From assembly GCF_006345805.1 (NCBI RefSeq), contig NC_043010.1:43028001-43092000 (forward strand): 64,000 nucleotides of DNA, read 5' to 3'. Shown piece by piece: positions 1 through 61,895 of the stretch (position 1 is its first letter; every line of letters begins with the position of its first letter). This stretch comes from Octopus sinensis (lineage: Eukaryota). A program made the translations under genes and the position numbers. The notes beneath the pieces are model-generated. The model made no database searches. It had not been told where the DNA came from and worked only from the letters and a program-made list of their open reading frames with translations.

Positions 1-8
1 TAGACTTT

Positions 9-405
9 ACTCTTTTACTTGTTTCAGTCATTTGACTGCGGCCATGCTGGAACGCCGCCTTTAGTCGAGCAAATCGACCCCAGGACTTATTATTTGTAAG
101 CCTAGTACTTATTCTATCGGTCCCTTTTGCCGAACCGCTAAGTGACGGGGACGTAAACACACCAGCATCGGTTGTCAAGCGATGTTGGGAGGACAAGCAC
201 AGACACACAAACATATACATACACACATATATACATATTTACGACGGGCTTCTTTCATTTTCCGTCTACCAAATACACTCACAAGGCTTTGGTCGGCCCG
301 AGGCTATAGTAGAAGACACTTGCCCAAGGTACCACGCAGTGGGACTGAACCCGGAACTATGTGTTTGGTAAGCAAGCTACTTACCACACAGCCACTCCTG
401 CGTCT
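9..405 (-). mobile_element. tRNA-headed CORE-like SINE (family A), near full length
   Basis: Minus strand reads A/B-box-like head (GGAGTGGCTGTGTGGTAAG...GTTCAGTCCC), CORE-like CCTTGGGCAAGTGTCTT, internal (TA/TG) tract and tail ...GTCAAATGACTGAAACAAGTAAAAGA; at least 6 similar copies in the window. Confidence 0.85.
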
Positions 406-575
406 ATTTGTTCATGCATCTTACTTCATTTCTTCTATTCGTTTCAGCTTGCATCATAAATTTAGTATTTTCATTCAGTATAATATTCAATTGCCATTTT
501 ACCTGCTGCTTCCTTCATTCAATTATTCTCCGGCTTACATCAGGTTATCTCTTTGAATGTCTAATTCTCACTTAC

Positions 576-603
576 ACTAAACATTTTCTTTACTACTGCC
601 TAG
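576..603 (-). other. Candidate last or 3'UTR exon of the micro-exon gene
   Basis: Strong acceptor tgtttgcttttttcag and donor gtaagtga on minus; stops in all three frames, so terminal or non-coding if real. Confidence 0.35.
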
Positions 604-689
604 CTGAAAAAAGCAAACATGAACCTTATCCTTGGATAAAACAATACACACGCTCACGTGTGTGCGCACGTGCATGTACATATGTAATT

Positions 690-1020
690 GTAAGCAGGGT
701 TTGTAGTTAAGAAGCTTGCACTATGTCATGGCATCTTGGACAAGTGTCTTCTACTATCGACCCATGTCAACCAAAAACTTGTGAGTGGATTTAGTAGACA
801 GAAGCTGAAAGAAGCCCATCACACATACACACAGGCATACATATATCCATATACATACATACATACATTGATATGTACATACATATATACACACACAAGC
901 AAAGGCTGGGCAACTTAGACTAAGAAGATGGTTTGCAGCCACATGATTTCAAGTTCAATTCTACCGTGTGGTACCTTGTGAGTGAAACTGATTGATGGAA
1001 ACTGTGTAGAAGCCTTTGAA
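690..1020 (+). mobile_element. Two decayed SINE family A fragments
   Basis: CTTGGACAAGTGTCTTCTACTAT...CTTGTGAGTGGATTTAGTAGACAGAAGCTGAAAGAAGCCC matches family A body. Confidence 0.65.
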
Positions 1021-1048
1021 AGTGTGTCTCTCTTTTTCTTCCCTCGTT

Positions 1049-1050
<2 letters not shown>

Positions 1051-1100
<50 letters not shown>

Positions 1101-1153
1101 AAAGAAAAGATGAAGACAGGGGTATAAACAACAACAGTTGTACTAGTTTGACA

Positions 1154-1190
<37 letters not shown>
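1051..1190. repeat. (TA)n microsatellites
   Basis: Two pure TA runs visible in sequence. Confidence 0.95.
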
Positions 1191-1191
<1 letters not shown>

Positions 1192-1193
<2 letters not shown>

Positions 1194-1395
1194 CATCATT
1201 ATCGACATTTAACATCTGTTTTCCATGCTAGCATGGGTTTGATAGTTTGATAGGAACTGGCATGGCCAGGGTCTGCACCAGGTTCCATTGTCTGTTTTCG
1301 ATTAGTTTCTACAGTTGGATTCCCTTCCTAAGTCCAATCACTTTACAGAGTGTACTGTGTGCTTTTTACATGGCACTATCACGTGGCATTAGCAT
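1192..1395 (-). mobile_element. RTE LINE 3' tail fragment with (GAT)n end
   Basis: Reverse complement of the GGAAGGGCATCCAGCTGTAGAAAC...CATGCTAGCATGGAAA...GATGAT tail seen attached to RTE ORF2 ends at 43810 and 54831. Confidence 0.7.
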
Positions 1396-1619
1396 CAGTG
1401 GTTTATACATGGAAGTAAAACAATGAATAATGTCTCTATTCCTTTTTGCCATTGCAACTGAGTGCTGTGTTTTTGAAGATCTGTGGGATAAAAAATCCCA
1501 TGCTTCAAAAACTACCAAGGAAGTGCATCCAGCTGTAAAATCCCATCTCAAATACATCCCCATACAACACATGCTAGCACAAGGAAAAATAGGAGTTAAA
1601 CAAATGAAATTAAATAGCA

Positions 1620-1647
1620 TATGTATGTGTGTATGTGTGTACACACA

Positions 1648-1705
<58 letters not shown>

Positions 1706-1760
1706 CACACACACACACGCCCATGTACATGCACACGCACACGCACACACACACACACAG
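1620..1760. repeat. (CA)n microsatellite
   Basis: Long CA run. Confidence 0.95.
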
Positions 1761-1809
1761 TGCTACTAGTAAGCTGACCCTCACAAAATATTTTTTATCT
1801 TTTATTGTT

Positions 1810-3483
1810 TTATTATTTCTATCCAATGTTAGAGATAATACTAGCTACAGATGCTAGCAAGTATGGCATAGGAGCCATGCTCCGACGCAAGGATAACGAT
1901 GGCAGGAGAAAGGCCATAGCTCACACATCAAGGACATTATTTCTGGTAGAGAGGTGTTGGCTATTATATTTGGTGTGAAAAAGTTCCACAGACATTTTTG
2001 GTTGCAAACGGACCATAGAGCTCTAATAACAATATACAGATCCAAAAAGGAATCCCCACATATATGGCAAACAGACTGCACTGGTGGAGTACCATTCTAT
2101 TAAACCACCATAATAGAATGGAATATCTTCCTTCAAAACCATTGGGACATGCCGATGGTCTGTCTAGGTTAATTTAAGAAATAATGAACCACTGGAAGAC
2201 ACCGTAAAAGCAGAAGCTGAAACAAAAACGTAATGTAGAACATCAAGTGTAAACTGCCAGTAACTTTGGAAGAAATAAAAACAAATGCTAGAAATGACAA
2301 ATTTATTGATGAAACAAAAAGAAAACTGTGGTCGACAAAAGAAATAAAGAAAGATCTGATGCAAAGAACCACCAAGAATTGAGCATGTATTCTACATGTG
2401 ATGGTGTACTAATGTATGCTCAGAGGGTGGTCATACCACAGACATTACAGAAGAGAATGCTAAAAGAGTTTCATGTCGAACACCCTGGCATCTCTAGAAT
2501 GAAAGTGCTGATGTGAAGTTTCATATACTGGCCAAGCATGGACAAGGAAGTTGAAAACCTGGTAAAAGGCTGCAGAGGATGTGTGCCAGCAGTGAAACTA
2601 ATTACTACAAAATGTGAACCTTGGCCAGAAGTGAAAACATCATGGTCCTGATTGCATATCGATTTTGCAGGCCTGGTAAATGGATATTATTACTTAATAG
2701 TAGACAGCTAAACAAAATGGCCTGAAGTTGTGAGGTGTAAATGACCAACCTCATTTTGGGTAATAAACAGCTTACATGAGCTGTTTGCAAGATTTGGTGT
2801 ACCTGGTATAATTGTCTCTGATAACAGAACACAGTTTGTATCCAGTTAGTTTAAAAGATTTTGCGAGATGTTCACATTAGAGCATAAACCTACAGCTCCA
2901 TATCACCCTACATTGAATGGAAGGGCCAAACAGTTCATGGACACTTTTAAGAAAGCTTTAAAGAAAGCTAATAAAGAAGCCATGGATGAGGTTGAAAGCC
3001 AACAGTTCTTAAGGGTATACAGGCTAACTCTGAACTCAAATGCACCAGAAGGAAGTTCACCAGCAGAATTAATATTTGCTAGAAAGGTGAAGTCAGTATT
3101 CGATAAACTGTTACTAGTAAAGAAAAAAATACATGCTAGTAAATACATGCCAAAATTCTTTAGAATTGGTGATAAGGTATATGTGAGAATGTACAAAAAT
3201 GGCAAGCAATACTGGGAAGAAGGAGAAATTGTAACATACATGGAAACAATGATTTATGGTGTAAGAAGCAGAAATGGAATGGAAAGGAGACAGAAATTAG
3301 CTTAAAGAAGGAGTCACAGAAAAGGAACCAACAAGAGTAGAAATACCGATGGATTGGCTATGTAACACTTTTTAGGTTCCAGCACTGTTACAAGAAGTTG
3401 AAACCACAAGTACAGGGGAAAGAGAGAGAACACTAAATTCCTAAAAGTAGACTCTAAGAAGAAAAGATATCGAGCATATATAT

Positions 3484-3521
<38 letters not shown>

Positions 3522-3813
3522 CTCAATAGTATATGTGTATATATATAAAGGAGGAGGTGGATGAATAAAAGAAATTGATTGTTAAATATAATAATTAAAA
3601 GAGGAGGTGTTGTATAGTGAAACTGTACACTCCTCCTGGTAAAAAGTGGTAGGAACGAGCCATTATAAATAAACCAGTAGCCAGTTGTCAAGAGAGGGTC
3701 AAGAATCAAAGAGTTGAGAGTTGACAGTTCTAGTTGGTGTCTTGTGGTGTTATCAGTAATAGTAAGACAGTAGAAGTTAGTGCATTACTATTCCAAAACA
3801 AAGAGATACAACA
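1810..3813 (+). mobile_element. Decayed Ty3/Gypsy LTR retrotransposon, 3' half (RNase H, integrase, PPT, 3' LTR)
   Basis: Broken frames give ATDASKYGIGA (RNase H), HPGISRMK...YWPSMDKEVE...C..C (integrase HHCC), HIDFAG, VSDN, PYHPTLNGRA; many stops and frameshifts. Confidence 0.9.
3608..3813 (+). repeat. 3' LTR of the Gypsy element (206 bp)
   Basis: Termini TGTTGTAT...ATACAACA form an 8-bp inverted repeat; immediately preceded by polypurine tract AAAAGAGGAGG (3597-3607). Confidence 0.8.
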
Positions 3814-3907
3814 TTATCTGCTGATGACTAGTAACTATTGAGGCTACTAGCGTAAAACAGCAACTACAGTACAACAGCAGTTGCACATCACACTTTACAA
3901 CACTCAT

Positions 3908-3991
3908 GGACACAAAATGTTGCTAGAAATTGAACTCACAACTTTATGATTGTGAGCAGAATACCCTAACCACTAAGACACATGCCTTCAC
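3908..3991 (-). mobile_element. tRNA-like head of another SINE family (family D), fragment
   Basis: Minus reads GTGAAGGCATGTGTCTTAGTGGTTAGGGTATT...GTGAGTTCAATTTC, similar to the copy at 62253. Confidence 0.55.
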
Positions 3992-4142
3992 AGTGAGTTA
4001 GAGTACGCATAAGCACCTATTCAGTATTTATAAGAAATAAGGTAAGAAAACTGTAAATTTTATTAGTTATATATCATATTTTGAATCTCAAGAATAAGGT
4101 ATTTTTAATCTCATAATCCAGAGATTAACAATACGTACATAC

Positions 4143-4218
4143 TTTTGACTTCAAAGTGCTTTTATGGAACAGCCATTGGTTCTCTGGTAAAGATATGAAG
4201 TTCTTGGCTTAGACTGAA
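4143..4218 (-). CDS. Candidate exon 5 of secreted micro-exon gene
   Basis: Acceptor catatttatgtcttag, donor gtatgtac; phase-1 frame reads (V)QSKPRTSYLYQRTNGCSIK, ending near the exon end or at the start of the next exon. Confidence 0.5.
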
Positions 4219-4610
4219 CTAAGACATAAATATGTTTGTTAGTTGTACCCGAGTTCTGCACAGAAAGGTCAAGAGTCCTTGCCTGTTTCAACGTTTTAAA
4301 TTTTTCCTCCTAAGAATTTTATCTATAAGTAGGAGATTCTGAAATACTTCGGGATCAAACAATTTGCTGGAACAGGCCCCTTAAATTGGGATATATGGTA
4401 AGCTTTCTAATTCATATTCAACAATTAAATTATGATTATTTTCCACTAAAATATTACTTTATAAATCTTTAAACAAATGGATTATTTGTCAAGAGTGCAA
4501 TTGAATAGCTCATTAGATTAATAAAATGAGATTTCATCTACAATCAAAGTAAATAGAAGCAATCGAATTATATATTAAAATTATAAGAAAAGATTTTTCT
4601 TTCTACTCAC

Positions 4611-4634
4611 CAAATTTGAATTTCTTCTCAGCAG
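4611..4634 (-). CDS. Candidate 24-nt micro-exon (exon 4)
   Basis: Acceptor attttgatatttacag, donor gtgagtag; phase 1-1, reads (A)AEKKFKF. Confidence 0.55.
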
Positions 4635-4974
4635 CTGTAAATATCAAAATATAATACCATTAGTAGGTTGTGTACAAAATGTTTTTGATATTAATGTAAC
4701 AAAATACAATGTAGACATTGTACTCAAATACAATATTTTAAAATTTTTTGCAAGATTATGTAATTAATATTTGATTTATCTTACATAATGTAGCCGAGCT
4801 GAAATATTTTGCAAAAAAATAAAGGATTACAATACATTTTTAACAACATAGATTAATGTCTTGTTTTAAAAAGTTTTGAAGAGTAAACATCTTTAATCAC
4901 TGACACTCGTGCAGGCTAGATACTGACAAAAGTAATCAAATAAGGGTTGAATAAATTTATTCATTATAATTATT

Positions 4975-5186
4975 TCTACTCTAGGCACAAGGCCCTGAAA
5001 ATCTTGGGGAAGGGAACTAGTTGATTACATCGACCCCAGTGTTTCACTGGTACTTAATTTATCGACCCCCAAAAGGATGAAAGGCAAAGTTTTCTTCAGC
5101 AGAATTTGAACTCAGAACTTAAAGGCAGACAAAATACTGCTAAGCATTTTATCCAGCGTGCTAACAATTCTGCCAACTGACTGCCT
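4975..5186 (-). mobile_element. tRNA-headed SINE family B
   Basis: Minus: GGCAG...GGCAGAATTGTTAGCACGCTGG...GAGTTCAAATTC...TTTGCCTTTCATCCTTTTGGGGGTCGATAAATTAAGTACCAG; matches the copy at 24735. Confidence 0.8.
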
Positions 5187-5252
5187 TAATTTATTCATTA
5201 TAACGAAACTATAATTATAGTTATCTTTATACAGAGCAACTTTTCACTTTTA

Positions 5253-5608
5253 TCTCTTTTACTTGCTTTAGTCATTAGGCTGTGGCGCCACTTTGGAGAA
5301 CTTTAGTCGAATGAATCGACCCGAGTACGTTTTCTCTTTCTTTTAAACCTGTTACTTATTCTATCAGGGATGTAGACACCAACACTGGTTATCAGGCAGT
5401 AGTGGAGGACAAATATAGACACAAAGACACACACACACACCCAACAGGCTTCTTTCAGTTTCCATCAACACCATATCCACTCACAAGGCTTTGATTGGCC
5501 TGAAGCTATAGTAGAAGACACTTGCCCAAGGTGCCATGCAGTGGGACTGAACCTGGAACCATGTGGTTAGGAAGCAAACTTCTTGCCACACTGTCACACC
5601 TGCTCCTA
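5253..5608 (-). mobile_element. SINE family A
   Basis: Collinear with the copy at 9-405. Confidence 0.8.
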
Positions 5609-6021
5609 TTCACACATAAAAATTATTATTTATAGAATTAGGATATTTTGTTTTCTGTTGCAAAGACAGTTAACTATTGAAGGTTTAGCATATCTAGCTG
5701 CAAATATATATCATTCATGATGCATTCCACTATTATAAATTGTAAAACTGCTACTGTTTCATTCTACAGCAAGCATAAATATTTTTACATACACTGAATT
5801 AATTGATCTCAGCTCTTAGTACATAAAAATATCCTTGAGTCTATTATTAATTGAAAGTTCATTTTTGTATGACAATATGCTTTGTGGATAAAGTAATAGA
5901 ATAAAATTCAGTCTATTACTGATTCTTATTTTGTATAATAATGAACTGGAAATAATATATTCAAAATAAATCATTTTAATAGTTTATCTCAAAGTGAATG
6001 TAATAACTAATTGTTTCTAAG

Positions 6022-6397
6022 AAAAACGCCGCCGCCGTGGTGATCTCATTCTTGCTCGCAACATCATAAGCAGAAAGTGTAACCTCTCGAAAGAGCTGTT
6101 CTTAACTCCTGCTCCGGAGCGTCGGCTGCGGGGTCACTCCAAAAAGCTCTATCTGTGAAAATTTCATCTCAATCGAAGGAGAGAGGCTTTCTCCGTCCGG
6201 GTTGCGGATCCGTGGAATAAGCTGCCGGACGAGATGGTGAAGATGCCGACGACCGCTCGGTTCAAAGTCTCCCTTGACCACAAGTGGCCTGAACTCTTTG
6301 CATGAAAACCACCCTGTACATAACTCCATGTCCCCCTACATGGCCTTGCTTTTTGCTTTTTGAGCCAAAAATTAACTAACTAACTAACTAACTAACT
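6022..6397 (+). mobile_element. 5'-truncated CR1-clade LINE 3' end with (TAAC)n tail
   Basis: Translates RRRRGDLI...RLRGHSKKL...AFSVRVADPWNKLPDEMV, the conserved CR1 ORF2 C-terminus; tail (TAAC)6. Confidence 0.85.
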
Positions 6398-6496
6398 CAG
6401 TTAAAAATTATTTGAATATGTCCGAAGATTTATGCTACCAGGTAGGTTTCAATCTTTTTTCATTCCAAAGAACTTTTTACTCAATATATTGATTTC

Positions 6497-6697
6497 AAAT
6501 TTTGGCACAAGGCCAGCAAGTTTGGGGTAGGGTATAAACTGATTATATCGACCCCATTGTTCAACTGGCACTTATTTTATTAATCCTGAAAAGATGACAG
6601 ACAAAGTCAATCTTGGGGGAATTCAAACTCAGAATGTAAAGATGAAACACTGCTAAGCATTTTGCCCAGCATGCTAACAATTCTGCCAGCTTGCTGT
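6497..6697 (-). mobile_element. SINE family B
   Basis: Collinear with other family B copies. Confidence 0.75.
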
Positions 6698-6849
6698 CCT
6701 CTTTTTTTTTTTACCCAATATATTACAAGCTATTATTTATAGCTATTCACTTCAAGATAAACCTTTGCATATTTCATGAATCTTCTATATTTGTATTCTA
6801 TAATGTAAACAATATATTAAAAATTCATTCAAAATTAATACAACACATT

Positions 6850-7008
6850 ATGTGTGTGTGTGTATGTGTGTGTGTGTGCATGTGTGTATGTGTGTGTGTA
6901 TACATACACACACACACACATACATACACACATACATACATACATACATACATACATACATACATACATACATACATACATACATACATAGATACATACG
7001 TATATATA
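6850..7008. repeat. Compound (TG)n/(CA)n/(TACA)n microsatellite
   Basis: Visible in sequence. Confidence 0.95.
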
Positions 7009-7234
7009 CCAACAGAGTGTGAGAGGTATTTGAGGATACTTAATTATCAGTATATTATTGTATTCAAACCAACTAAAATTTTTTTCATTTCTTTCAGAAC
7101 CCACCATATAATTCTGTGTAGAACAAGAAAAATCGAAATAAGAAGGAAAAAAATTCTGGTTAGAAAAAAAAAGAAATGGAAAAAAAAAATAATGTGTTGA
7201 AAGAAGAAATTTTTAAAATCTCAAAGGGGAAAGG

Positions 7235-7510
7235 AAATGTGGCAGACACCCCCAGGTCCACTACTAATAAATAGTCCACTACTAATAAATAATGTTGACA
7301 CAGTCAGTAATGTCAAACTGTGAGGTACCCTTTTCCAGCCAATCCCACAGAGATGACAAAATATGTTGTCATAATGTGGGACATAACATATCCTTAGTAT
7401 ACCATGGCTTCACTGAAAGCCTTCATTGTTCAGGTGATAGCTGAAATAAATGAGAACCATTTAGTGGAGGTATGTCAATGATTCCAGTCCCACATTGAAG
7501 ATTTATAGAA
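7235..7510 (+). mobile_element. Tc1/mariner (maT-like) transposase C-terminal relic
   Basis: ASLKAFIVQVIAEINENHLVEVCQ*FQSHIE resembles the C-terminus of the DD37D copy at 33192-34429. Confidence 0.45.
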
Positions 7511-7777
7511 TAATCTTATAAGAAAGCTTATTGAGCATATCTACACAAATTTGGATTAAAACACTTAGTTTCTGCTAGATTTTGTTATTTTATTAAATTA
7601 CCAAATATGTCCTCAAATGCCTCTTGCATCCTGTATATATATTTCTTAGACAAGTGAGATAAATATGGTATGACACTAAAAGATGGGTTTCCATGTAAAT
7701 GAAGAAAATGTTCGTTGATGAAGAATTAAATGTCAGAAATTAGATGGAAAATGAAATAGTGTTTAACAAGTGCTTAC

Positions 7778-7843
7778 CTCTTTTCAGTCTGAGGGGACTA
7801 GAACCAGTAAAGTTAAAATGCACTTCAGTTTGTTGTAACTGTA
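7778..7843 (-). CDS. Candidate 66-nt exon 3 ending in RLKR
   Basis: Acceptor tttgttcaattttgcag, donor G|gtaagc; only the phase-1 frame is open: (V)QLQQTEVHFNFTGSSPLRLKR. Confidence 0.6.
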
Positions 7844-8982
7844 CTGCAAAATTGAACAAAATTTATAACTTATGCTTATAAGTTAATGACAATAATTGTT
7901 AGTTGTTACTATTACTATCACTAATACTACCACCATGATCATTATTACTATCATTCCATTAACTTCCAGCACTAACACTCCGTTTTACACAGTCAGAAAT
8001 ATAACTTCTGACCTAAATCTGGTTTCTTATATTTCTGGGCAAAGTAAAAGCATTAAGGTTTATCAATGTTCTAAATAGCTACTCATGGATACAGTGCTTT
8101 GGTGTGCATTATATTATTGGTGCTAAGTAAGAAATTTTCATTATTGACTTGTGTATAATACCCTTATTGCTGAACAAGTTATTAGTAAAATATAATTCTA
8201 GAGTACCTTTCAGTAATGTGATGAGATAGTGAGATAGGTTTCAATTAGTATGTGGACAGAGAATATCACTTCAACTTTATGGGTATGTGGACAGAACATA
8301 TCACTTCTGTTCTGTTCTTTTAATACAAGCATAATGGATAATGGTTACTGGCTGATGTTAATTTTAGCCACTAAAACATGATCTCTGCCCTTTTCTGTAT
8401 TTTAATGGAAAATTTATATTTCTGCTATTCAGGTTTCTGCAAGAGAGTTGAGTTAAGAACTCAGTATGCTGAATATGCAAGCTAGTTTGATTCCATTAGT
8501 GAGTTAAGAAAAGGTATTAATATCATCACCTTCCATTTCACCTTTCTTGTGAAGTGTAAAATCTTTGAACCTAATCAAATAAAACCAATAACATTAGCCT
8601 CATACTGTAGCAATGTGGTTGAATATCACAGCAACTGTTTTATTGTACTTAATTTTGTCCTTTTGAATTAAGCTGTCACCAGAGCCCATTTTGTCTTTCA
8701 TTCTTCAGAATCATTAGAATAAGCATTGGTATTAATTCAGTCATCTGCTTCCTTCATACTATTTTTTAAAGCCATTATTGAGTTGGAATTGGAAATCACT
8801 TGAACACTAACATTCCTATAGTGCTATTAATATACTAAAAGTATTTGAAAAGTAAATGATGAAGAGAAATTTCATAGCAAAACATATCAAAATGCATTTA
8901 AAAGTTACAATACTTCCTACATTTGTTTACATGATGATTTAATACCAAATATATTGTGTAATAATATTACATAACTACTCAC

Positions 8983-9000
8983 CAGCCTTTTGTCTCATAA
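8983..9000 (-). CDS. Candidate 18-nt micro-exon (exon 2)
   Basis: Very strong acceptor gtattttcctttctttttttccag and donor G|gtgagtag; phase 1-1 reads (V)MRQKA. Confidence 0.55.
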
Positions 9001-9219
9001 CTGGAAAAAAAGAAAGGAAAATACATTCATATATATAAAATATAACATCTGAATTAACTAGACAGCATATGTATGTAGGTAAAATGTGCATACAGAATGC
9101 CTCATATAGGAATTGAATCTGAAACCACATGTTTGTGAAGCCAAGCTTCTTAACAATACAGTGATTCCTGTACCCATACATATGCACGTGTGTGTGTGTG
9201 TGTGTTATATATATATATA

Positions 9220-9520
9220 TCATCATCATCATCATCATCATCATCCTCGTTTAACGTCCGCTTTCCATGCTAGCATGGGTTGGACGATTTTGACTGAGGG
9301 CTGGCGAACCAGATGGTTGCACCAGGCTCCAATCTTGATTTGGCAGAGTTTCTGTAGCTGGATGCCCTTCCTAATGCCAACGACTCCGATAGTGTAGTGG
9401 GTGCTTTTTATGTGCCACCGGCACATGGGCCAGTCAGGCGGTACTGGCAACAACCTCACTCGAATCCTTTTACACATGCCACCAGCACAGGTGCCAGTAA
9501 GGCGACTTTGGTAACGATCA
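9220..9520 (-). mobile_element. RTE LINE 3' tail
   Basis: (CAT)n followed by the conserved RTE tail in reverse. Confidence 0.85.
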
Positions 9521-9950
9521 ATATATATGTATATATATATATATATATTGTGTGTGTGTGTGTGTGTGTGTGTGAGTGTGTGTGTGTGTGTGTGCGCGTG
9601 CGCGCGTGTGTGTAGGTTTATTAACAAATTCCATTATGTGATAAAAGTACTGGAACAGTGTATACTGAACATTATCAAGTACACAACCAGTTGACTGAAT
9701 TTAAGTGTAAGCGTCTGAACATTCTAAAGACAGATCCAACTTAAACTTAATTTTCAGGAAGAATCAGTATGATAGAGTGTGTGATAAGGTTTGATCTTTA
9801 AATTACTGGTAGAGTCCCCCTTTCAGGCTTCAATGCTGTTTCTTTCTTCTCAATTTCATTCACAAGGCTTGAATTTACCTGAGGCTATGATAAAAGACAC
9901 TTACACATGATACATTGCAGTATGACCAAACTCAGACAACTGCCATATGG

Positions 9951-10165
9951 TCAACTCTTTAACATTTAAACCAGCCATATCTGGCCAAAATATTCTATGT
10001 TAAAACTGGCCAGATCTGGCCCCTCACACATACCCTACAATATCATTCTAAACTTTAAGTTACCTCATAAAAATCTGAAGCTGTGAGACAATGCATGATT
10101 AACTCAAAACAATGTGAATAATAAGCATTACATCAGACATAATAATCTGAATGCTAAAGGGTTAA
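9951..10165 (+). mobile_element. TTAA-flanked (piggyBac-type) MITE, family 1
   Basis: Ends TCAACTCTTTAACATT...AATGCTAAAGGGTTAA; collinear copies at 41802, 44525 (reversed) and 45236. Confidence 0.7.
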
Positions 10166-10715
10166 ACTACACATAAATAAGAAGGTTTGTGGAAGGGCAC
10201 TGGCAAAATATCCTCAACATGTAGAATTATAAAATTCAGATTCAATGGGAAAGAAAACTAGGGATGCAAAGAGATGTTGAAGAAATAGAAAGGTCACATA
10301 GATCAATGCTACTGGAAGTGGTGGTCCACAGACTGATGCCTGTCTGCAAGCCATCAGCTTCTGGTATGTGGCAAGTTTCCAGAAAAGAAAGAAACATTAT
10401 AAAATGCTTATAAAATGCTTATGTAATGTTGTATCATTCGTTTACAAAATATAAGATAAAAAAAATTGCCAACTTTTATTATATTCGTTATATATATTGT
10501 TTCCGGTACAAATTAATATTACTAAGAAATATCACCGGGCTCTGGCACATTGGAAAAAAAAGTCTACCTGTATGCCACATCAGATAGTTTGAGAAGCACT
10601 GATATAGATGACAATGATATTATAATGAGAAAGATTGATAAGAAAAGAAACCAAAAAAAAATTGATAAAATTCAAATGGATATTGTAGTTGTGATACCCG
10701 TGCCGGTGGCACATT

Positions 10716-11260
10716 GGGCCTCACAGAGGAAATGACGAAAGACCGAGACCTCTGAGATATGCTGTGACTGCGAAGACCCAACAAATGAAGTAAGTTCATG
10801 GCTTGCAGGACAGCCTGCTGTGCTAACCTTGGATCATAGAGTGACCCGCTGTGCTTGAGGAAACCTATTGAGTCAAGTACGTCAATATCAACATCACAAT
10901 AAAAATCAAATGGAAATTGTAGTTATGATACCCATGCCAGTGGCACGTAAAAAGCACCATCTGAACATAGCTGATGCCAGCACCACCTGACTGGCATCTG
11001 TGTTGGTGACACGTAAAAAGCACCAACCAATCATGGCCATTTCCTAGCCTCCTCTGACCCCTGTGCCGGTGACATGTAAAAACCACTCACTACACTCACG
11101 GAGTGGTTGGCGTTAGGAAGGGCATCCAGCTGTAGAAACTCTGCCAGATCAGACTGGAGCCTAGCACAGCCTCCTGGCTTCCCAGACCCCGGTTGAACCG
11201 TCCAACCCATGCTAGCATGGAAAACGGACGTTAAACGATGATGATGATGATAATGATGAT
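10716..11260 (+). mobile_element. RTE LINE 3' end (ORF2 tip, tandem-repeat 3'UTR, (GAT)n tail)
   Basis: GLTEEMTKDRD-like ORF2 end, three GTGCCRGTGGCACRTAAAAA units, conserved tail. Confidence 0.85.
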
Positions 11261-11454
11261 ACTGCATTAAAATCAAGATTGTTAGATGACAGATTATCAT
11301 CATCATTGTTGTTGCCATCATTGTCACCCTCGTTGTTTTCATCATCATTGTCATTGTTATTGTTGTAATTATTGTTGTTGTCATTGATATTGTCATCTGT
11401 GGCAGCGGCGTTGTCATCGTTGTTGTCGGTAGTGTCAGAATTGGCAACGTCATA

Positions 11455-11835
11455 TCAGTGACAGTGGCATTGTCATTTCACATCTGTTTTTCACGCTGGG
11501 ATGGGTAGAACGGTTTCACAGGAACTGGCAAGTCAGGTGACTGCACCAAGCTCTGCTGTCTGTTTTGGTGTGGTTTCTATGGCTGGATGCCCTTCCTAAC
11601 ACCAACCACCCAGCAGAGTGGACTGAGTGCTTTCTATGTGACATCAGAGAGGTTTTATGTGACTCTCGGAGTGGTTGGCATTAGGAAGGGCATCCAGCTG
11701 TAGAAACTCTGCCAGATCAAGATTGAAGCCCGGTGCAGCCATCTGGTTTGCCAGCCCTCAGTTATTCGTCAAACCCATGCTAGCATGGAAAGCAGACGTT
11801 AAACGATGATGATGATGATGATGATGATGATGATC
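11455..11835. mobile_element. Two RTE tails head-to-head (minus 11455-11640, plus 11665-11835)
   Basis: GGCTGGATGCCCTTCCTAAC on one side, TTAGGAAGGGCATCCAGCTG...(GAT)n on the other. Confidence 0.75.
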
Positions 11836-12269
11836 AGAAGCAGTGAAGTCACCAAGTAATTTGCTAGACAAGACCCTTCAACTGGTGGAGAGTAGTTTTT
11901 GGGGGAAAGAAAAGGTGTTTTGCATTTGAAAAAAGATATGGCTACTTCAGATAGAGAGAAAGAGAAGAAAGAAAGATGGTGAAGTTGAGACAGAGAGTGG
12001 GTAGGGACTGTACTTCAAGATCATAGTGAAGAGGACCAGGGATTTGAGAAGGTGGTTTCACAAGATTTTGAAAGGAGAGTAGGAGCTAGAGGTGTGGGGA
12101 AAGGGAAAGGGTAACAGAGGCATATTTTATACAGGTAGGTGTTTATGTGAGGGAGAATGGAGGGGAAGCAGGAAACAGCAGTGGTGAGCATGGGTGCATT
12201 GTGGAGACAGGAGGAGGCTATGGATTGTACTTTGTGTTTTCTGCATAGCATATTGCTAGTTGTCTCAGA

Positions 12270-12770
12270 CCTTTATCAGTTCCTCTGTAAGGTTCAACAT
12301 CCAAAAATCATTTCTCACTACTTCATCCCACATTTTCCTGGGTCTTCCTCTTCCTCATGTTCTCTCCACATTTAGAGATCAGCACTTCTTTATGCAGCTG
12401 TCCTCATCCATATGCATCACATGACCATACCAGTGCCATCTTCTCTCTTGCACACAATATCTGATGCCACTTACACCCAATTTTTCTTTCAAAACATTTA
12501 AACATTGTTTTACGTATACTGACATTGTACACCCAGCAGTGTATTCTGGCTTCATTTTTCTTTCATGCTTTCACATGTCTTCTGCAGTTACAGCCCATGT
12601 TTCACTGCATCATACAGTTTGCTCTTCACACTGAGGGAAAAGCCCTTTGTGACCATTATTCTAGCAGCTATGCTTTCAGAGTAACCTCCACCATTGCTAA
12701 TTTGGTCTCATTGGTAATGAAAACTATCTACTACCACCAAAGATTCCCCCTAGACACTTGAGGAAATCTA
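12270..12770 (-). mobile_element. Decayed RTE ORF2 C-terminal fragment
   Basis: Collinear with 18700-19130 (HGSETWAVT / WYGHV-like segments). Confidence 0.6.
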
Positions 12771-13170
12771 TTTCCTGTATGACAGAAGATAAAAATGAAT
12801 GATGATTTATAGGCATGAGACCTTAACATAAAATGAGTTAGGCATAACATATTGTGAGCATGCATTACTCATATGATCCAAGAGAAATAGATTTTTTTCT
12901 GCTGGAAGTCAAAACCAGATCATAGACATTTCTTTAGGAAATTACTGCCATTAAATCAAGACAATATGAATAATGAGAGCTGGGAGGATAAGTTTTCTAG
13001 CTTAAAAAAATGACAAAATACTTCTATTACTTTTATATCATATGAGGTATGAAAACCAATATGTAAAATGAAAATGAAGACATTGATTTAATGAAGTTCT
13101 GTATCAGAAAACTGAAATAAAATTTAAATAATTTCATATCAGCAATTAAGGTGTAGTATAACTACACATT

Positions 13171-13366
13171 CAGTTGTCGAGTGGTACTCGCACGAGCGGA
13201 AACGACCACCCGGAAGGCCTCAAAGACGGTGGAGTTACGATTTTAGGAGGACGATTGGGATCACGTGGATGAGAAAGGCACGATCCAGAGAGGAGTGGAC
13301 AGCGTGCTGTGACCAGCGGTGTCAAATGGACACCTGATGGACTGGTCGGTCAAGGTGATCAAGGTG
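13171..13366 (+). mobile_element. Short 5'-truncated RTE-1-type LINE with 13-bp TSD
   Basis: Encodes ERKRPPGRPQRRW...WMRKARSREEW; tail (CAAGGTGAT)2; TSD ATAACTACACATT at 13158-13170 and 13367-13379. Confidence 0.8.
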
Positions 13367-13549
13367 ATAACTACACATTTGCTTCATTCACTAATATATA
13401 AATTTATTCTAAGATACATTAATTTCTGAATCTTTGCAATACAACTTTGAAATGCACCTATATGTTTCAATATCAATAGTTTGTAAGGATTTAAACAAAT
13501 AACTTTTTTCATTATTTAGCTGCTGTTTGTAATGTAACTCAAAAGATAT

Positions 13550-13787
13550 TTAACCTGCTTCTTACAAACACACAAGAGACTGTTCCTAGTTCTATGATAC
13601 AAACTTCTTGTGTTTAAGTGATTTAAATTGAAACTTTCAATCAAAATTTTATTTTAGCTTATGTTTCAAACACCAGATTAATAATGACAAAATTATTGTT
13701 TTTTTTTAATTCTTCACTATTTCAAAAATTAATTGAAACAAAAGTAGTTCAGTTCAATAGCAGTATGGTAAAAAGAAAAGAGGTTAA
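13550..13787. mobile_element. Possible second TTAA-flanked MITE family
   Basis: Ends TTAACC...GGTTAA; single decayed copy. Confidence 0.3.
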
Positions 13788-14114
13788 TTAAAATTATGAT
13801 GGAAAGTTTAATTTAAATGCAAACACTTTTTAACAAGGTTTGATCATAGGTTCAAAGACAATTTCAGGAGTGTTGGTATCAAAAAGATTATTCAAATTCT
13901 CTGTTTTGAAAGAATAATGATTGACTTACAGGAAAGAATTTACCTTTATATTCAGTAAAGGTATAACTATTAAAGGGCATAACATTGCTTTAGACAAAAA
14001 GTGAATGTAAAGTGAAAAAATAATTGGATCTGAAATTTGAATAAATCATATTTTTAATAATATATAAAAATGATGATTTGGCCTTCTTCAAAATCAAATA
14101 TGAAAATATCCTAC

Positions 14115-14175
14115 CTCTTCCATTTGTTAACCCCAAAATGACCAACAACATGAGAACAACACCAATCCTGAACAT
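14115..14175 (-). CDS. Candidate first coding exon: signal peptide [20 protein letters not shown]
   Basis: ttcaccATG context, basic residue then hydrophobic core and small-residue cleavage region; ends phase 1 at GAG|gtagga. Confidence 0.6.
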
Positions 14176-14209: not shown

Positions 14210-14246
14210 GATTGAGCAAAAGGCCAGCAAAGTGTGTTATATATAT
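14210..14246 (-). promoter_or_regulatory. Putative TATA box plus initiator for the signal-peptide exon
   Basis: ATATATATAA at 14246-14237 and TCAATC at 14215-14210, about 25-30 nt apart; no AG acceptor between the repeat and the ATG. Confidence 0.35.
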
Positions 14247-14311
<65 letters not shown>

Positions 14312-14469
14312 CCCACACACAAACACCCACACACAGATACATACATGCACATATATAAATGTATGTATGTATATATGTGTGTATATATGTATATATGTGT
14401 GTATATATATGTATATATGTGTGTTTATGTGTATATGTGTATGTGTATGTATATGTGTATGTATATGTG

Positions 14470-14510
<41 letters not shown>

Positions 14511-14591
14511 CATACATATATATATACATACATACATATATATATATATATACATACATACATAGATACATATATATATATATATACATAT

Positions 14592-14648
<57 letters not shown>

Positions 14649-14667
14649 CATACATAGATACATATAT

Positions 14668-14699
<32 letters not shown>

Positions 14700-14708
14700 A
14701 TATATATA

Positions 14709-14747
<39 letters not shown>

Positions 14748-14840
14748 CATACATATATACATACATATATAGATATATATAATATATACATACATGCACA
14801 TATACATATATATACATTTATGTATGCATGATGTATGTAT

Positions 14841-14891
<51 letters not shown>

Positions 14892-14905
14892 ACACACACA
14901 CACAC
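14247..14905. repeat. ~660-bp compound (CA)n/(TA)n/(TATG)n microsatellite
   Basis: Visible in sequence; source of many spurious ORFs. Confidence 0.95.
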
Positions 14906-16340
14906 AGAAAATGCAGTGATTGACAAAAACGAATGATAAAGAGAAAAGGAGTGAGAAAGAAATAAAAGCTAAGCTTTGTAAGATTTATTGAATTCCGCAG
15001 ACAAAATCACAGACAACAAAGCATTAGAAAGTTTAATCTTGTTTGTCCTATTCAATGCTGGATCTTTATTCCAGTCTCAGGCCCGGCTTTTCCCATCACC
15101 AAATCAATAATCTTATTTATTTCAAATTCTTAGACCTTTCTTGGAACCAAAACAGGTGTCTTAACAAAAAACAATTGTTCTAAGGCCATTTAATGTTGAC
15201 AGATGTCAAATTCTTTTTTGAACACTCATTTAGTTTATATTTTAATACTTGTATATTATTTGTTCCCAAGTTTTATCAACAACGCCATGAATTTTGTTTA
15301 AATCCAGAACCAATGGAGATCATGACTTCTTATTAATAATTATATGAAGAGTTAACCTTAAATTATGATTTATGCTCACACTGTAAAACCCCAAAGAATA
15401 CATTGTTATCCTTGAGAATGAATTTCTCCTGTTGTTAAAAACTGGACACTCAGTGAAGTATAACACATTTGCTCATAGAGGGTGATTCTAACGCTACTCT
15501 ATGAAAATAATTAAAGTACAACAGGACAAAAATGTAATCAGGAGTCTGACTTAGTGAAGATAAGCTCCTGATATGCACACATATAATATAGGCTGTACTT
15601 TTCATGTGAGGCGGTGTCCATAACATTTACAGGTTTATCCAGGCTCATAAAATTGATGTGAGTGCAGTTCAACTTGAATATTTTGTTGGTAGATGTTTAT
15701 AAGAAAGAAGTATGAAGGGGAGAATTTAGAGGGTGTCAGTGGTGGAAAGGAGGGAATAAGTAAAAGTTTTATTGTGTGATCTGAGAAGGGCAAGACACTG
15801 CATTGGTGACAAGGAGAGGCAGATTATTAAGTAAATCTGAGTGCATCAGTAAGCAGATGGCTAGTTCAGAGAACATTGTCTGTTGTAGTGGTGATAGAAT
15901 AAGCAGAGAAAGAAAAAACAGCATGTTCGTGGGCCTGTGGTTGTAACATGTTGGTAAGTGAATCTTGGATAAACAGCCTAGATTACCTTTTTTTGAATGT
16001 GATCTAGGGATCAAGGTTGATCTAGGATGCTTATATGGACAACAGAAGCACTATTTCTCCTTCTCCCACCTCACCCTTCTCTCTCTTTGTTTTAGTGTGT
16101 GGATATATATATATATCATATTTCAGTCCACTGAAACAAGCTGCAGTATGTCTTATTTTCAAAAAGCACAGCTTCTCTGATACTGCTGCCTACCAACTGA
16201 TTGTTCTCACTTCTAAGATCTTAAAGAACCAAGTCTTTCATACTACGAGTCTCTTTTATTGTACTTAACTGCAAAATTATGTTTTAGGATAGCTAAGAGC
16301 CTGTATAAAGTGTAATGCATAGTTGTTTGCTAAATGGAAC

Positions 16341-16342
16341 TC

Positions 16343-16388
<46 letters not shown>

Positions 16389-16790
16389 TATCATCATCGT
16401 TTAGTGTCCGCTTTCCATGCTGGCATAGGTTGGAGGGTTCAACTGGGGTCTGGGAAGCCAGAAGGCTGCACCAGGTCCAGTCTGATCTGGCAATGTTTCT
16501 ACGGCTGGATGCCCTTCCTAATGCCAACCACTCCATGAGTGTAGTGGGTGCTTTTTACTTGCCAGACGAGGCTGGCAAACTTCCACGATTGGATGGTGCT
16601 TTTTACGTGCCACTGGCACGGAGGCCAGGCGAGGCAGGCAACAGCCATGATCAGATGGTGCTTTTTACATGCCACCGGCACGGAGGCCAATCAGGGTGGC
16701 ACTGGCAACAGCCATGTTTGGATGGTTCTCTTATGTGCCACTGGCACTGGTATCACAGCTACAATTTCCATTGATCGATTTCGATTTTTA
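16341..16790 (-). mobile_element. RTE 3'UTR and tail with long (CAT)n
   Basis: About 18 CAT units, conserved tail, four GTGCC..GGCAC units. Confidence 0.85.
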
Positions 16791-17570: not shown

Positions 17571-20535
17571 TTGTATGTATGTATGTATGTATTTACATTT
17601 CAGGTGCAAAGGCCCAGCTTCAGAAGAAAAGCAATCTGGGAAATGTCCAGTTATTCCTGTTCCATTCAGCCATACAGGGTTATTCCAACTTTGAACTTTT
17701 CTGCATTAAGATCTGAAATGTAAGATCGTCTATACCCTGGTGATGGAGGTTCATCTCATCCTATATTAAATGCATCCATATGGACACATATTGTGATGAA
17801 CTAAATTTACCAACATTACTATGGATCACCGAGCTCCCAGAAACAGCTGTTGGACTTATCTTTCTTCCACCCGCTTTAATTTTATCTATCATTTGTACTC
17901 TGTGTAAGTTGGACCTATTAATATAAATAACTATATATTTATACATAAAATTCATCATCTGAAAGTTTCCACTTCATTTTGCATGTATACATATATACAT
18001 ATTTTGTATTTCATGCATTTAATATATTTGATCTGTCTAATTTGTTTATTGCTTTTATACCCACTCAACTTGATGCCCCTTATAACCTTTCTTTACCTTG
18101 TGGAATGATCCTCTGTAAAGACATTGGAGTCTAAATCTAAATCTTTTGTCCTTTGAGCCCTACTGTCTTCTATACAGAGAATATCTACATCTCATTTGTG
18201 AACAATACATATATATATATATATTTATATGTATCATCATCATTATCGTTTGACATCTGTTTTCCATGCTGGCATGGGTTAAGCAGTTTGAATGGAAACT
18301 GGTGAGCTGTGGGCTACAGCATGTTCCAATCTGATTTGGCAAGGTTTCTACAGCTGGATGCCGTTCCTAATGCCAACCACTCCAAGAGTGTAGTGGGTGC
18401 TTTCTATATGCCACTGGCATGGGTGCCATTCAGACGGCACTGGCATCAGCCATGACTACAGTTTCACTTGGTTTAACAGGTCTTCACAAGCACAACATAT
18501 TACCCAACGAATGAAGGGTGCTTTTGATGGGCCAGTTATGCAACACTGGCATCAGCTATGACTACGATCTCACTTGGCTTGATGAGTCTTCTCAGGCATG
18601 ACATATCTCCAAAGGTCTCATTTGCTTGTCATTGCCTCTGAGTGGCCCAACAGTTGAAGATCGTGCTTCATCACCTCATCCCATGTCTTCCTGATCTACG
18701 TCTTCTACAGGTTCCCTCCACCATTAGAGTGTAACACTTCTTCACACAGCTGTTCTTATCTATATGCATTACATGACCATACCAGCACAGTCATCTGTCT
18801 TGCACACTACATCTGATGAATCTTATGTCCAACTTTTCTCTCAGGATGCTTACACTCTGTCATGCATGCACACTGACATTTCACATCTAGCAAAGCATAC
18901 TAGCTTCATTTCTTACAAGCCTACACATGTCCTCAGTGGTCACAGCCCATGTTTCACTACCGTGTAGCATGACATTTTGCAGACAAGCATCATACAGTCT
19001 GCCTTTCACTCTGAGTGAGAGGCCCTTTGTTGCCAGCAGAGGTAGGAGCTCTCTGAACTTTACCCAGGCTATTCTTATTCTAGCATCTAAGCTCTCAGAG
19101 CATCCACCTTTGCTACTGGTCACCTAGGTAATGGAAGCTATTGACTACTTCTAGTTTTTCCCCTGGCATGCGACGAAATCTATTTTCTGTACATTTACAA
19201 TGTTTATTGTCCCTGTGCACCTTCCACACACAAAAACTATTTTCTCTGTTAACTGTCCTCTGATATTGCTGCACCTCTTATGTATCCATAACTTACACCT
19301 GGTACATCTTATGGAGTTTCTACCTATGCCTTTTCTACAGATTGAGCAGGGTCATCTACCTGAAGGGATTTGTGATTTGTCTGCCTTCCTACTTACTAAG
19401 ACTTTGGTTTTTGCTAGATTAACTCTAAGGCCCTTTGATTCTAGACCTTACTTCCATACCTGAAACTACATGCTAAATTCATTGCTGAATTCATTGCTGT
19501 CATCTTGCTGATAGCATCTCTGCACACAGCCTGCATAGCTCTGACAAGCCATTCAGCTAAGTGTTTTTAGCAACTGGTCAACAACAGATCATGATATGCT
19601 GTCAAAGGCTTTCTCCATAGTGAGTTGCCCTTATCTTAGAAATCCTACATTTGTCTCGCTAGGAAGAGGGTATCTCTAGTACTCTGTCCACACACATAAT
19701 TGAATTACATTTCTTTTAAGTTAAATTTTCTTCCTAATTAATTATGATATAACTTTTCTATAGTTTTCAAAAGTTGATCTATAAATTTGATATCTGTATT
19801 GTGGCTTTTTTTTTTCTCAAGTATTTCCTTTATCTTTATAACAATTGGCAATAATACTATGGCATCCATCATTGCGCAAGTTTTCTCACTCTACAACTGG
19901 ACTGATTATGCAAGTAAATAGGGCATGCCCTATTTCATTGGATATTTTCAGTGTCTCAGTGACTATCTTTGGTGGTCCAGTTACTTTTCTCACCTTCAAA
20001 TCTTTAATCTCCTTTTCAGCTGTATAGCAGTTAACTTCTGTAGCTGGCCCCTCTGTTGGGTCGTTTTATACTTGGAGCACTTCCACTCTTACCTGTCATT
20101 CAGTGACCCCTTTAAGTAGCATTTTCATGTCTTTTTTCTTTTCAGCATTAAAGAGGACAAATGCATCACATTTCTCCCCCATGTACATCCTAATTCATAC
20201 TGACACACTGCTTTTCAATCCTGAACAACACACGCCCTCTGATTTTCTTGCTGCAGAACATTGGCAAACCTCTCACTTTTCAGTTTCAGTTTCTCTCCTC
20301 GATAAGTATGCCTGATGTCTAACTACTCTTCTAAGTACCTGATTCATCGTTCCCTTGTCTTCCACCAAACTTCTCATCTTTCTTAGCTTTTTGGCTCTAT
20401 TTGCTTTACTGTTTCTACCACCATATACCCTTTCTCTCATTGCCCCATTGACAGATCTGGCATGTGGATCACCTTGTAGAAAGTATCAGTTACCTTTTTT
20501 TTTAAAGTTCCTATCGTCTCTCCTCCTCATCATGT

Positions 20536-22637: not shown

Positions 22638-23230
22638 GCATAGTCAAGGAGATCTTTCAACTTCCATATTGTCCTTCATCAGAAGGTCTTGTATCACTAA
22701 TCTGTCAAGCTCTTATCTTGAAGTTACTGATTGCTTGTCTATGTTAAATGGTACATTCTCCATGAGAGAAGGACTTAGTATTTACATCTAATCATCTATC
22801 CTGCTTCTTGAGGAGTATGAAGTCTATTTAGCTTGCATGTTCACTTGAGTAGTTGGTGATCAGGTAGGTGGCCGATTTCCTGAAGTTGGAAAAGGAGAGA
22901 TCATTTATGTCACCAAATTCTGAGAGTCTTGACCCATCTCCATTCTTTGTATTATATTCATAATTCAAAGTAGTCATCATGTATTGCCCAATATACATTG
23001 AAGTCACCAGTCATGATAAAGAGGTCAACAGTCCTTTTGCTCATCAGTCTGTTCAGAACGTGAACTATGTGCAAAGATAACTGTTGTTGCAGTGTCACCT
23101 ATGACAAGTTTAAGGTTAATTATTGTCATATACTCTGGCTACTCAATTACTTTATCAATTTTTCTGCAAACAGATTGCCTATTCTATCCTTTCCAGTACT
23201 GTTATCCATCAGGAAGAAGCAGTACTTGCC

Positions 23231-24229: not shown

Positions 24230-24660
24230 CTGTTAGTGCTGGTGCCACATAAAAAAGCACTGGTGCCACTCAAAAAGCACCCAGTAAACCCTGTAAAGTG
24301 GCTGACGTTAGGAAGGACATCCAGCTGTAGAAACCATGTCAAAAGAGACAATAAAACCTGGTGTGGCTCCTGGCCTTCCCAGCTCCTGTCAAACTGTCCA
24401 ACCTATGCCAGCATGGAAAATGAACATTAAATGATGATGATTAATGCCTGTTAGCTGTTTTTGCCAATATTGCACATGTCCATATTTCCACGTTAACAAA
24501 CCAGTATACTCTGTAAAATGGTTGCTGTTAGTAAGGACATCCAGCTGTAGAAGCCATGCCAAAACAAACATTGGAGGTTCGCCATAGTTTTCTGGTTTAT
24601 TGGATCCTATCAAAGCCTCCAACCCATGCTCAAATTAAATGATGATGATGATGATGATAT
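24230..24660 (+). mobile_element. Two tandem RTE tail copies
   Basis: TTAGGAAGGACATCCAGCTGTAGAA twice, each followed by GATGAT. Confidence 0.7.
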
Positions 24661-29500: not shown

Positions 29501-29869
29501 TAAATGAAGTATATATAGTACTGTGAGGAGTGTATACAGGGGTAAAAACTAATATTAAGAGAGAACAGCACAAGAAAGAGAGAGAAAATGAAAGAAAAAG
29601 AAAAATATATAAGAGCGTTGTAGTTTGCTTGAAGCATTGTGATATTGAAGAGTGCGAAAAGTTTGATAAAACCTAGGTTTTTAAAACTTTTCGCATTGTT
29701 AGAAGCTATTTTCTCACTTTCAACATTTTTCTATATAAGTAAAATTTCTACCAATTCAAAACTGGTTGAAAGAGTAGAAAATTGGAAGAATGAGGTGCAA
29801 AATGAAATCTAAAAAGAGAAGATATATATACATACAAACACACATATATATATAAATACTCATACATAC

Positions 29870-44495: not shown

Positions 44496-44524
44496 ATATA
44501 CTTACATGAATACGAAATATAATT

Positions 44525-61689: not shown

Positions 61690-61895
61690 AGCCTCCTCAG
61701 GCCCCTGTGCCGGTGGCACTTAAAAAGCACCCACTACACTTACGGAGTGGTTGGCGTTAGGAAGGGCATCTAGCTGTAGAAATACTGCCAGATCAGACTG
61801 GAGCCATGTGCAGCCTCCTGGCTTCCCAAACCCCGATCGAACCGTCCAACCCATGCTAGCATGGAAAGCGGACGTTAAACGCTGATGATGATGAT
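61690..61895 (+). mobile_element. RTE tail
   Basis: Conserved tail and GATGAT end. Confidence 0.85.

Follow-up and report, generated by a model that had tools for sequence, protein, structure and literature searches.

A probable Octopus-restricted gene of short, phase-1 symmetric exons for a small secreted prepropeptide

With regard to very short coding exons, a stretch of 64,000 nucleotides from Octopus sinensis (contig NC_043010.1, positions 43,028,001 to 43,092,000 of the forward strand; hereafter termed the window) raises the question of whether a handful of small, widely spaced segments on its minus strand belong to a single gene and, if so, what kind of product this gene specifies. A preliminary description, made from the letters of the sequence, had proposed a signal-peptide exon and four further exons, spliced to a micro-exon gene for a small secreted prepropeptide that resembles the micro-exon genes (MEGs) of Schistosoma. 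The analysis reported here indicates that window positions 1-14175 on the minus strand quite probably contain the first two-thirds, counted from the 5' end, of a real gene that is confined to the Octopus lineage and specifies a small secreted prepropeptide. Four of the five proposed exons, including the one that encodes the signal peptide, stand up to scrutiny, and the fifth does not.

Exons in the window and their counterparts in other Octopus species

Direct reading of the minus strand located all five segments, each of them flanked by AG and GT, and splicing them in phase 1 produced an open reading frame (ORF) of 78 amino acids that terminates with CSIKAL and a stop codon. Coding exon 1 (14115..14175, 61 nt) opens with an ATG in the context caccATGt and ends in phase 1 at the donor GAG/gtagga. 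The signal peptide that it encodes consists of a basic n-region, a hydrophobic core of 13 residues and T-N-G at positions -3 to -1, followed by R. Micro-exon 2 (8983..9000, 18 nt, phase 1-1) encodes VMRQKA, exon 3 (7778..7843, 66 nt, phase 1-1) encodes VQLQQTEVHFNFTGSSPLRLKR with an NFT sequon and a convertase-type RLKR site at its 3' end, and micro-exon 4 (4611..4634, 24 nt, phase 1-1) contributes AAEKKFKF. Jointly, exons 1-4 encode 56 amino acids; the introns between them measure 5.1, 1.1 and 3.1 kb and every junction lies in phase 1.

The strength of the splice signals was assessed by ranking all 890 GT and 756 AG dinucleotides on the minus strand of positions 1-14175 with a position weight matrix. 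The donors of exons 1, 2, 3 and 4 take ranks 7, 1, 2 and 4 among the 890 GTs, and the acceptors of micro-exons 2 and 4 take ranks 2 and 117 among the 756 AGs. The 18-nt exon is the top AG..GT candidate exon on both strands of the complete 64 kb (score sum 15.9). When 64 kb were simulated 30 times with a first-order Markov model, symmetric candidates that are open in phase 1 never attained a score of 14 and attained a score of 12 at a rate of 0.03 per simulation. Exon 1 is the sole signal-peptide-like ATG exon with a donor on either strand of the window and had no equivalent in 40 simulations, the filter for signal peptide plus donor having been set up post hoc, when the sequence had already been seen. 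Exons 1-4 are clearly more than a chance assembly.

When the spliced peptide was compared with 5.8 billion proteins, exactly two matches were obtained. One of them, P0001 (CAI9733000.1 / A0AA36BEK5_OCTVU; E=5e-28), is a protein of 77 residues deposited as "Hypothetical predicted protein [Octopus vulgaris]", the other, P0002 (A0A0L8I598_OCTBM; E=8.5e-21), is an uncharacterised Octopus bimaculoides protein of 99 residues. The first 56 amino acids of P0001 are identical to the product of exons 1-4, with exon 1 accounting for residues 1-20 and exons 2 and 3 likewise without any change, and are followed by the tail VRLQQQEIPVYFNFDIQTEDD. P0002 agrees with exons 1-4 at 47 of 56 positions (84%), with nine substitutions and neither an indel nor a stop, before it continues as EFRVRRRKNKPGVVVLRIRNGNRNKVPRRRQCPKHPTSPAPLT. 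Its counterparts of micro-exons 2 and 4 read VLRQQA and ASEKKFKF, 17 of the 22 residues of exon 3 are the same, and the signal peptide, the NFT sequon, RLKR as well as the phases and boundaries of the exons are all retained. RLKR is identical in the window, in O. vulgaris and in O. bimaculoides. Exons 1-4, the signal peptide, the sequon and an R-x-K-R site that ends at an exon boundary, all of which had been put forward before, are in agreement with these results.

At the level of the genome, we compared the window with the O. vulgaris locus on chromosome OX597827.1 of assembly GCA_951406725.2 (locus L001 in the following). Both are collinear over window positions 1-25763 with 93-97% identity, and exons 1-4 are intact in O. 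vulgaris with GT-AG borders, so that the exon conservation in a related genome that had been suggested as a check was found. Aligned intron positions differ in 371 of 11,946 cases (3.1%). A divergence of this size, taken with the identical protein, is in keeping with the sister species O. sinensis as the source of the window and speaks against the deposited O. vulgaris assembly. The 169 nt of exons 1-4 contain one synonymous change, AAG versus AAA in micro-exon 4 (Poisson P(≤1 | 5.2 expected) ~0.03, worked by hand). O. sinensis and O. vulgaris separated 2.5 million years (My) ago and O. bimaculoides is ~34 My away (PMC10700109); across the latter distance, 16% of the amino acids have changed and the reading frame, the exon boundaries, the sequon, the convertase site and the position of the stop codon in a 3' exon termed 5a (see below) have been kept. 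Gene models and alignments together show what reads as a spliced micro-exon gene for a small protein with a signal peptide, and at least three Octopus genomes have kept it.

No relatives beyond the two Octopus proteins emerged from an exhaustive phmmer search with P0002 against 1.84 billion representative sequences, and a word-based search that started from the joined tail exons added none. No Pfam family was matched, a sequence search of the Protein Data Bank gave nothing significant (best E=0.34) and an Rfam scan of the whole window at the gathering threshold gave no match. Literature searches for the accessions, for the peptide strings and for micro-exon genes in octopus found nothing, and one study of the salivary-gland proteome of O. 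vulgaris has no matching peptide strings in its supplements. As far as the searched libraries show, the gene is apparently restricted to the genus Octopus.

The 3' end of the gene and competing explanations

Where does the gene end? According to tblastn, neither of the two annotated tails is present in the window, and the gene therefore continues past window position 1, which aligns with L001 position 22382. Positions 1..4610 of the window constitute the start of intron 4, through which the gene leaves the window, and the remaining coding exons were placed by homology with O. vulgaris. In L001, the coding part of exon 1, i.e., the signal peptide, occupies 10001-10061 (61 nt), followed by exon 2 at 15339-15356 (18 nt), exon 3 with its RLKR end at 16483-16548 (66 nt) and exon 4 at 17752-17775 (24 nt). 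The O. bimaculoides model then uses exon 5a (22917-23058, 142 nt), the O. vulgaris model exon 5b (29736-29792, 57 nt, phase 1-1) and exon 6, which starts at 30356 and contributes 8 coding nt (ATGATTGA, 30356-30363). On the scale of the window, exon 5a would lie ~0.5 kb and exons 5b and 6 ~7.4-8 kb beyond position 1. All junctions of this map are of the GT-AG type, and the internal coding exons of the O. vulgaris model (18, 66, 24 and 57 nt) are in four of four cases multiples of 3 in phase 1-1, for which the a-priori expectation is ~(1/3)^4. The 18-nt and 24-nt micro-exons and the phase-1 symmetry of the internal exons had already been recognised in the preliminary description and are confirmed by the map. 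Nothing in that description accounts for position 576, which it gives as its lower bound.

Both alternative 3' exons are present in O. vulgaris DNA, and it is in the choice of this exon that the O. vulgaris and O. bimaculoides models differ. Exon 5a of O. vulgaris reads EFRVRKRKNRPG...APLI followed by a stop; it shares 83% of its residues with the tail of O. bimaculoides, the positions of the stop codons coincide, and exchanges between K and R account for several of the differences. A strong donor (CAG/gtaaga, score 7.2) lies 11 nt behind the in-frame stop, and exon 5a may thus not close the gene but represent an alternative internal exon that contains a stop. The motif V-x-LQQ-x-E..FNF is common to exon 3 (VQLQQTEVHFNF...) and exon 5b (VRLQQQEIPVYFNF...; shuffle p=3e-4), and among ~7000 stop-free 19-mers from the 20-kb gene span exon 5b is the unique best match to exon 3, which points to exon 5b as a diverged duplicate of exon 3.

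The preliminary description had closed the gene inside the window, with a segment at 4143-4218 as fifth exon. If this were a genuine terminal coding exon, perhaps of a minor isoform, the protein would end in ...AAEKKFKFVQSKPRTSYLYQRTNGCSIKAL. The segment continues the phase of exon 4, has AG and GT at its borders and provides 22 codons ahead of a stop; about one third of random AG-started segments fall into a usable phase, though. Strong GT-AG flanks had been claimed for every exon, a statement that applies to the donors of exons 1-4 but not to this segment, the acceptor of which is ordinary (rank 219 of 756) and the donor of which is weak (score 0.8). Neither annotated model uses the segment, both having other exons in its place, and the search of 5.8 billion proteins found none that has words in common with it. 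The segment departs from O. vulgaris at one position only, by a non-synonymous exchange (S>L). We consider such a five-exon gene quite improbable; the segment most likely is plain sequence of intron 4, corresponding to L001 position 18169. The frame of the spliced product of about 80 residues is correct as described, an ORF of 78 amino acids being obtained from the five segments, while its last part is unsupported. Because the fifth exon is unsupported, so is the cationic peptide AAEKKFKFVQSKPRT... that was proposed to be released from the precursor; the tail encoded by exon 5a, with a net charge of +14, is much more cationic. The true terminal exons lie outside the window and were therefore invisible to the earlier reading. 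Splice scores are unremarkable or poor for the additional frame-shifting exons that had been listed as weaker candidates (13944-13966, 8542-8570, 7602-7630 and 4785-4798).

Two further explanations deny the existence of a protein altogether. The locus could be transcribed and spliced but effectively non-coding, in which case the ORFs of 77 and 99 codons would be annotation artefacts, arising in part from projection of proteins from one species to the other. The tiny ORF, the lack of any domain and the lack of homologues outside Octopus would suit this explanation, as would the absence of RefSeq-type proteins of other Octopus annotations from the search results. The O. vulgaris annotation combined Iso-Seq and RNA-seq data (PASA/TransDecoder) with ab initio predictors and with Spaln alignment of the O. 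bimaculoides UniProt proteome (PMC10700109), and such a projection step is thus part of the pipeline. Against it stand the textbook signal peptide, the four out of four internal exons in multiples of 3 (about 1% if lengths were free), the preservation of frame, NFT, RLKR and the exon 5a stop over ~34 My despite the change of 16% of the residues, the synonymous nature of the lone exonic difference from O. vulgaris and the in-frame recurrence of the exon 3 peptide motif in exon 5b, and we regard a non-coding transcript as improbable. Even less credit is due to the view that there is no gene and that splice-like motifs and a hydrophobic ORF have come together by chance in intergenic, AT-rich DNA. 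Such DNA does offer AG and GT sites in the hundreds (756 and 890, respectively, within 14 kb), and the candidates had been picked after the fact; yet four of the seven top-ranking donors of these 14 kb belong to exons 1-4, the simulations yielded nothing comparable, and the matches to independently deposited proteins of two species effectively refute this explanation, for which we see hardly any room.

A protein-coding gene for a secreted precursor is therefore the reading that we prefer, and several points weigh against it. Splicing is deduced from gene models and sequence signals, and the weight matrix behind the ranks is a rough metazoan one, with approximate frequencies of human sites, and serves as a ranking device only. 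The test of exon versus intron divergence is supportive but marginal (P ~0.03). For exons 1-4, the O. vulgaris and O. bimaculoides models are not fully independent of each other because Spaln used the O. bimaculoides proteome, and alternation between exons 5a and 5b within one species is likewise deduced, namely from the models of two species. The failure to find relatives outside Octopus or a Pfam family is to be counted here as well, as is the absence from the product of an amidation signal or another hallmark of a known peptide family. As to the interdependence of the models, it is the O. vulgaris DNA itself, irrespective of annotation, that shows exons 1-4 to be conserved, and exons 5b and 6 cannot derive from P0002. 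From the coding end of only 8 nt in exon 6 we infer that transcript evidence is its easiest explanation.

Predicted product and relation to known systems

The predicted route from gene to product can be outlined as follows. The N-terminal 19 residues would act as a signal peptide for co-translational secretion and would be removed by cleavage after TNG. Asn37 of the NFT sequon is possibly N-glycosylated. A furin- or prohormone convertase-type enzyme would cut after RLKR, exactly at the junction of exons 3 and 4, and would give rise to an N-peptide of ~25 residues (RVMRQKAVQLQQTEVHFNFTGSSPL(RL)) and to a C-peptide, the character of which, acidic and repeat-containing or highly cationic, would be set by the choice of the 3' exon. 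After removal of the signal peptide and cleavage at RLKR, the N-peptide is predicted to comprise 25 amino acids with a net charge of +2. The C-peptide predicted via exons 5b and 6 has 29 amino acids and a net charge of -2, the one predicted via exons 4 and 5a has 51 amino acids, a net charge of +14 in O. vulgaris and +15 in O. bimaculoides and internal RKRK/RRKK sites. Only the first copy of the repeated motif is followed by a dibasic site, and no Gly suited for amidation is present. As all internal coding exons are symmetric, skipping of any of them would preserve the frame.

AlphaFold2 returned a confident prediction for P0002 only in the N-terminal helix (residues 2-28). The remainder has a mean predicted local distance difference test (pLDDT) score of ~48-61, with block means of 53-61 over residues 51-99, i.e., the tail. 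A body modelled with such low confidence is in line with a peptide precursor that is disordered. Classical neuropeptides, as a rule, are of greater age, and many of them are amidated. Because of the orphan status, the divergence of 16% in 34 My, the disorder and the arginine-rich tail, we lean slightly towards a fast-evolving defence or secretory peptide rather than a classical neuropeptide. The venom, antimicrobial or signalling roles suggested in the preliminary description are speculative.

How close is the resemblance to the MEGs of Schistosoma? These genes have internal exons of 3-81 bp, mostly in multiples of 3, and 10-20 micro-exons with a typical length of 15 bp make up most of the coding sequence (CDS); the family is specific to the Schistosomatidae and its proteins are related in sequence (10.1101/2023.06.21.545858). 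The octopus gene shares with them a first coding exon for a signal peptide, a small predicted secreted product, internal exons (18, 66, 24 and 57 nt) that fall into the range of 3-81 bp and are multiples of 3, long introns, restriction to one lineage and a frame that would survive the skipping of exons. In contrast to the MEGs, it contains only four internal coding exons, and no more than two exons (18 and 24 nt) are 27 nt or shorter, together 42 of 234 coding nt or ~18% of the CDS. Its protein is without similarity to MEG proteins in the exhaustive phmmer search, skipping of exons is only hinted at by the different 3' exons of the models, and an octopus is a free-living mollusc, unlike the parasitic schistosomes. 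The similarity in architecture is real but modest and does not involve homology. The equivalence that the preliminary description had seen thus extends to part of the architecture and not to exon number or sequence, and, with neither 10-20 micro-exons nor a sequence relationship, we would not class the gene among the MEGs. An independently evolved, MEG-like octopus gene, in which the choice of the 3' exon and skipping of symmetric micro-exons would lead either to an acidic repeat peptide or to an arginine-rich peptide of net charge +14 for host defence, venom or signalling, is conceivable, and we consider it rather unlikely.

A more fitting description is that of a prepropeptide gene of the convertase type, composed of phase-1 symmetric mini-exons. 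In common with precursors processed by convertases it has the signal peptide, the conserved R-X-K-R site, a predicted disordered body and a peptide motif that is repeated on what appear to be duplicated exons (3 and 5b). A Gly-Lys-Arg amidation signal as in neuropeptide precursors is missing, and the protein does not match any known molluscan neuropeptide or antimicrobial peptide (AMP) family. Precursors of the amphibian AMP type are composed of a signal, a propiece, KR and a cationic peptide, and the one predicted octopus isoform that ends with a net charge of +14 recalls this arrangement; on the other hand, the octopus propiece is not acidic. Phase-1 symmetric exon modules are a general pattern in secreted and extracellular proteins of metazoans. 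The phase-1 intron directly behind the signal-peptide exon conforms to this pattern, as do 1-1 exons that could be duplicated or skipped in frame, the difference from phase-1 modules encoding folded domains being that the octopus modules are peptide-sized (6-22 residues).

Other features of the window and significance

Several observations concern the non-coding parts of the gene and its immediate vicinity. Intron 3 spans 3143 nt in the window versus 1203 nt in the O. vulgaris locus. About 2 kb of it, at 5559-7550, are specific to the window in this comparison and contain (TG)n/(ATAC)n microsatellites, and a search for terminal repeats or target-site duplications flanking this segment yielded none that are clear, only microsatellites. 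Upstream of the gene, a compound microsatellite, (CA)n-(AT)n-(AC)n, extends over ~660 nt (14248-14906) and ends 72 nt upstream of the ATG, the 72-nt spacer being identical in O. vulgaris. At the edge of the microsatellite, TATATATAA (14237..14245, minus strand), read from the sequence and beginning 70 nt upstream of the ATG, could speculatively be regarded as a putative TATA box. Elsewhere in the window, a 15-nt AG..GT candidate exon (GTTAAATCAGAAAAG; 49258-49272, minus strand) reaches the second-best combined splice score (15.0) and may be a micro-exon of another gene.

A short interspersed nuclear element (SINE)-like repeat of ~200-350 nt with the translated motif ...LDALPNANHS... is present in at least 12 copies of 70-89% identity, at 1188-1376, 9225-9452, 10930-11260, 11473-11828, 16375-16683, 18232-18419, 24297-24658, 44149-44502, 45671-46003, 55011-55429, 61670-61896, 62685-62905 and 63508-63658; four copies reside in introns of the peptide gene. 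The plus strand carries a long interspersed nuclear element (LINE)-type retroelement (20536-22554) with an intact ORF of 672 amino acids (RVT_1, E=3e-36), a mariner-type transposase fragment (38540-39013; Transposase_1, E=7e-17, and DDE_3), an ORF resembling a transposon remnant without a Pfam match (33670-34086) and another of this kind within intron 4 (2868-3305), for which a weak match to the integrase core rve_3 (E=0.005) stays below the curated cutoff. Two ORFs with tandem C2H2 zinc fingers, one of 489 residues on the minus strand (39970-41439) and one of 415 residues on the plus strand (58097-59344), are typical of the zinc-finger gene (ZNF) expansion in octopus; their exact sequences are absent from the protein collection.

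Exons of 18 and 24 nt as well as a signal-peptide exon can thus be recovered from raw cephalopod sequence, an approach that fails at the terminal exon. The gene had been called hidden and invisible to ORF finders, but eukaryotic annotation pipelines already model it in two Octopus species; it is an orphan small secreted protein gene that is contained in two public annotations and yet unstudied. What emerges is an uncharacterised, Octopus-restricted candidate for a secreted prepropeptide with symmetric short exons, an internal repeat at the level of exons and two contrasting C-terminal ends, and genes of this kind are poorly covered by homology-based annotation. Should its expression be tissue-specific, e.g., in the nervous system, the salivary gland, the skin or the suckers, this gene would offer a tractable lead to a new bioactive peptide of cephalopods.

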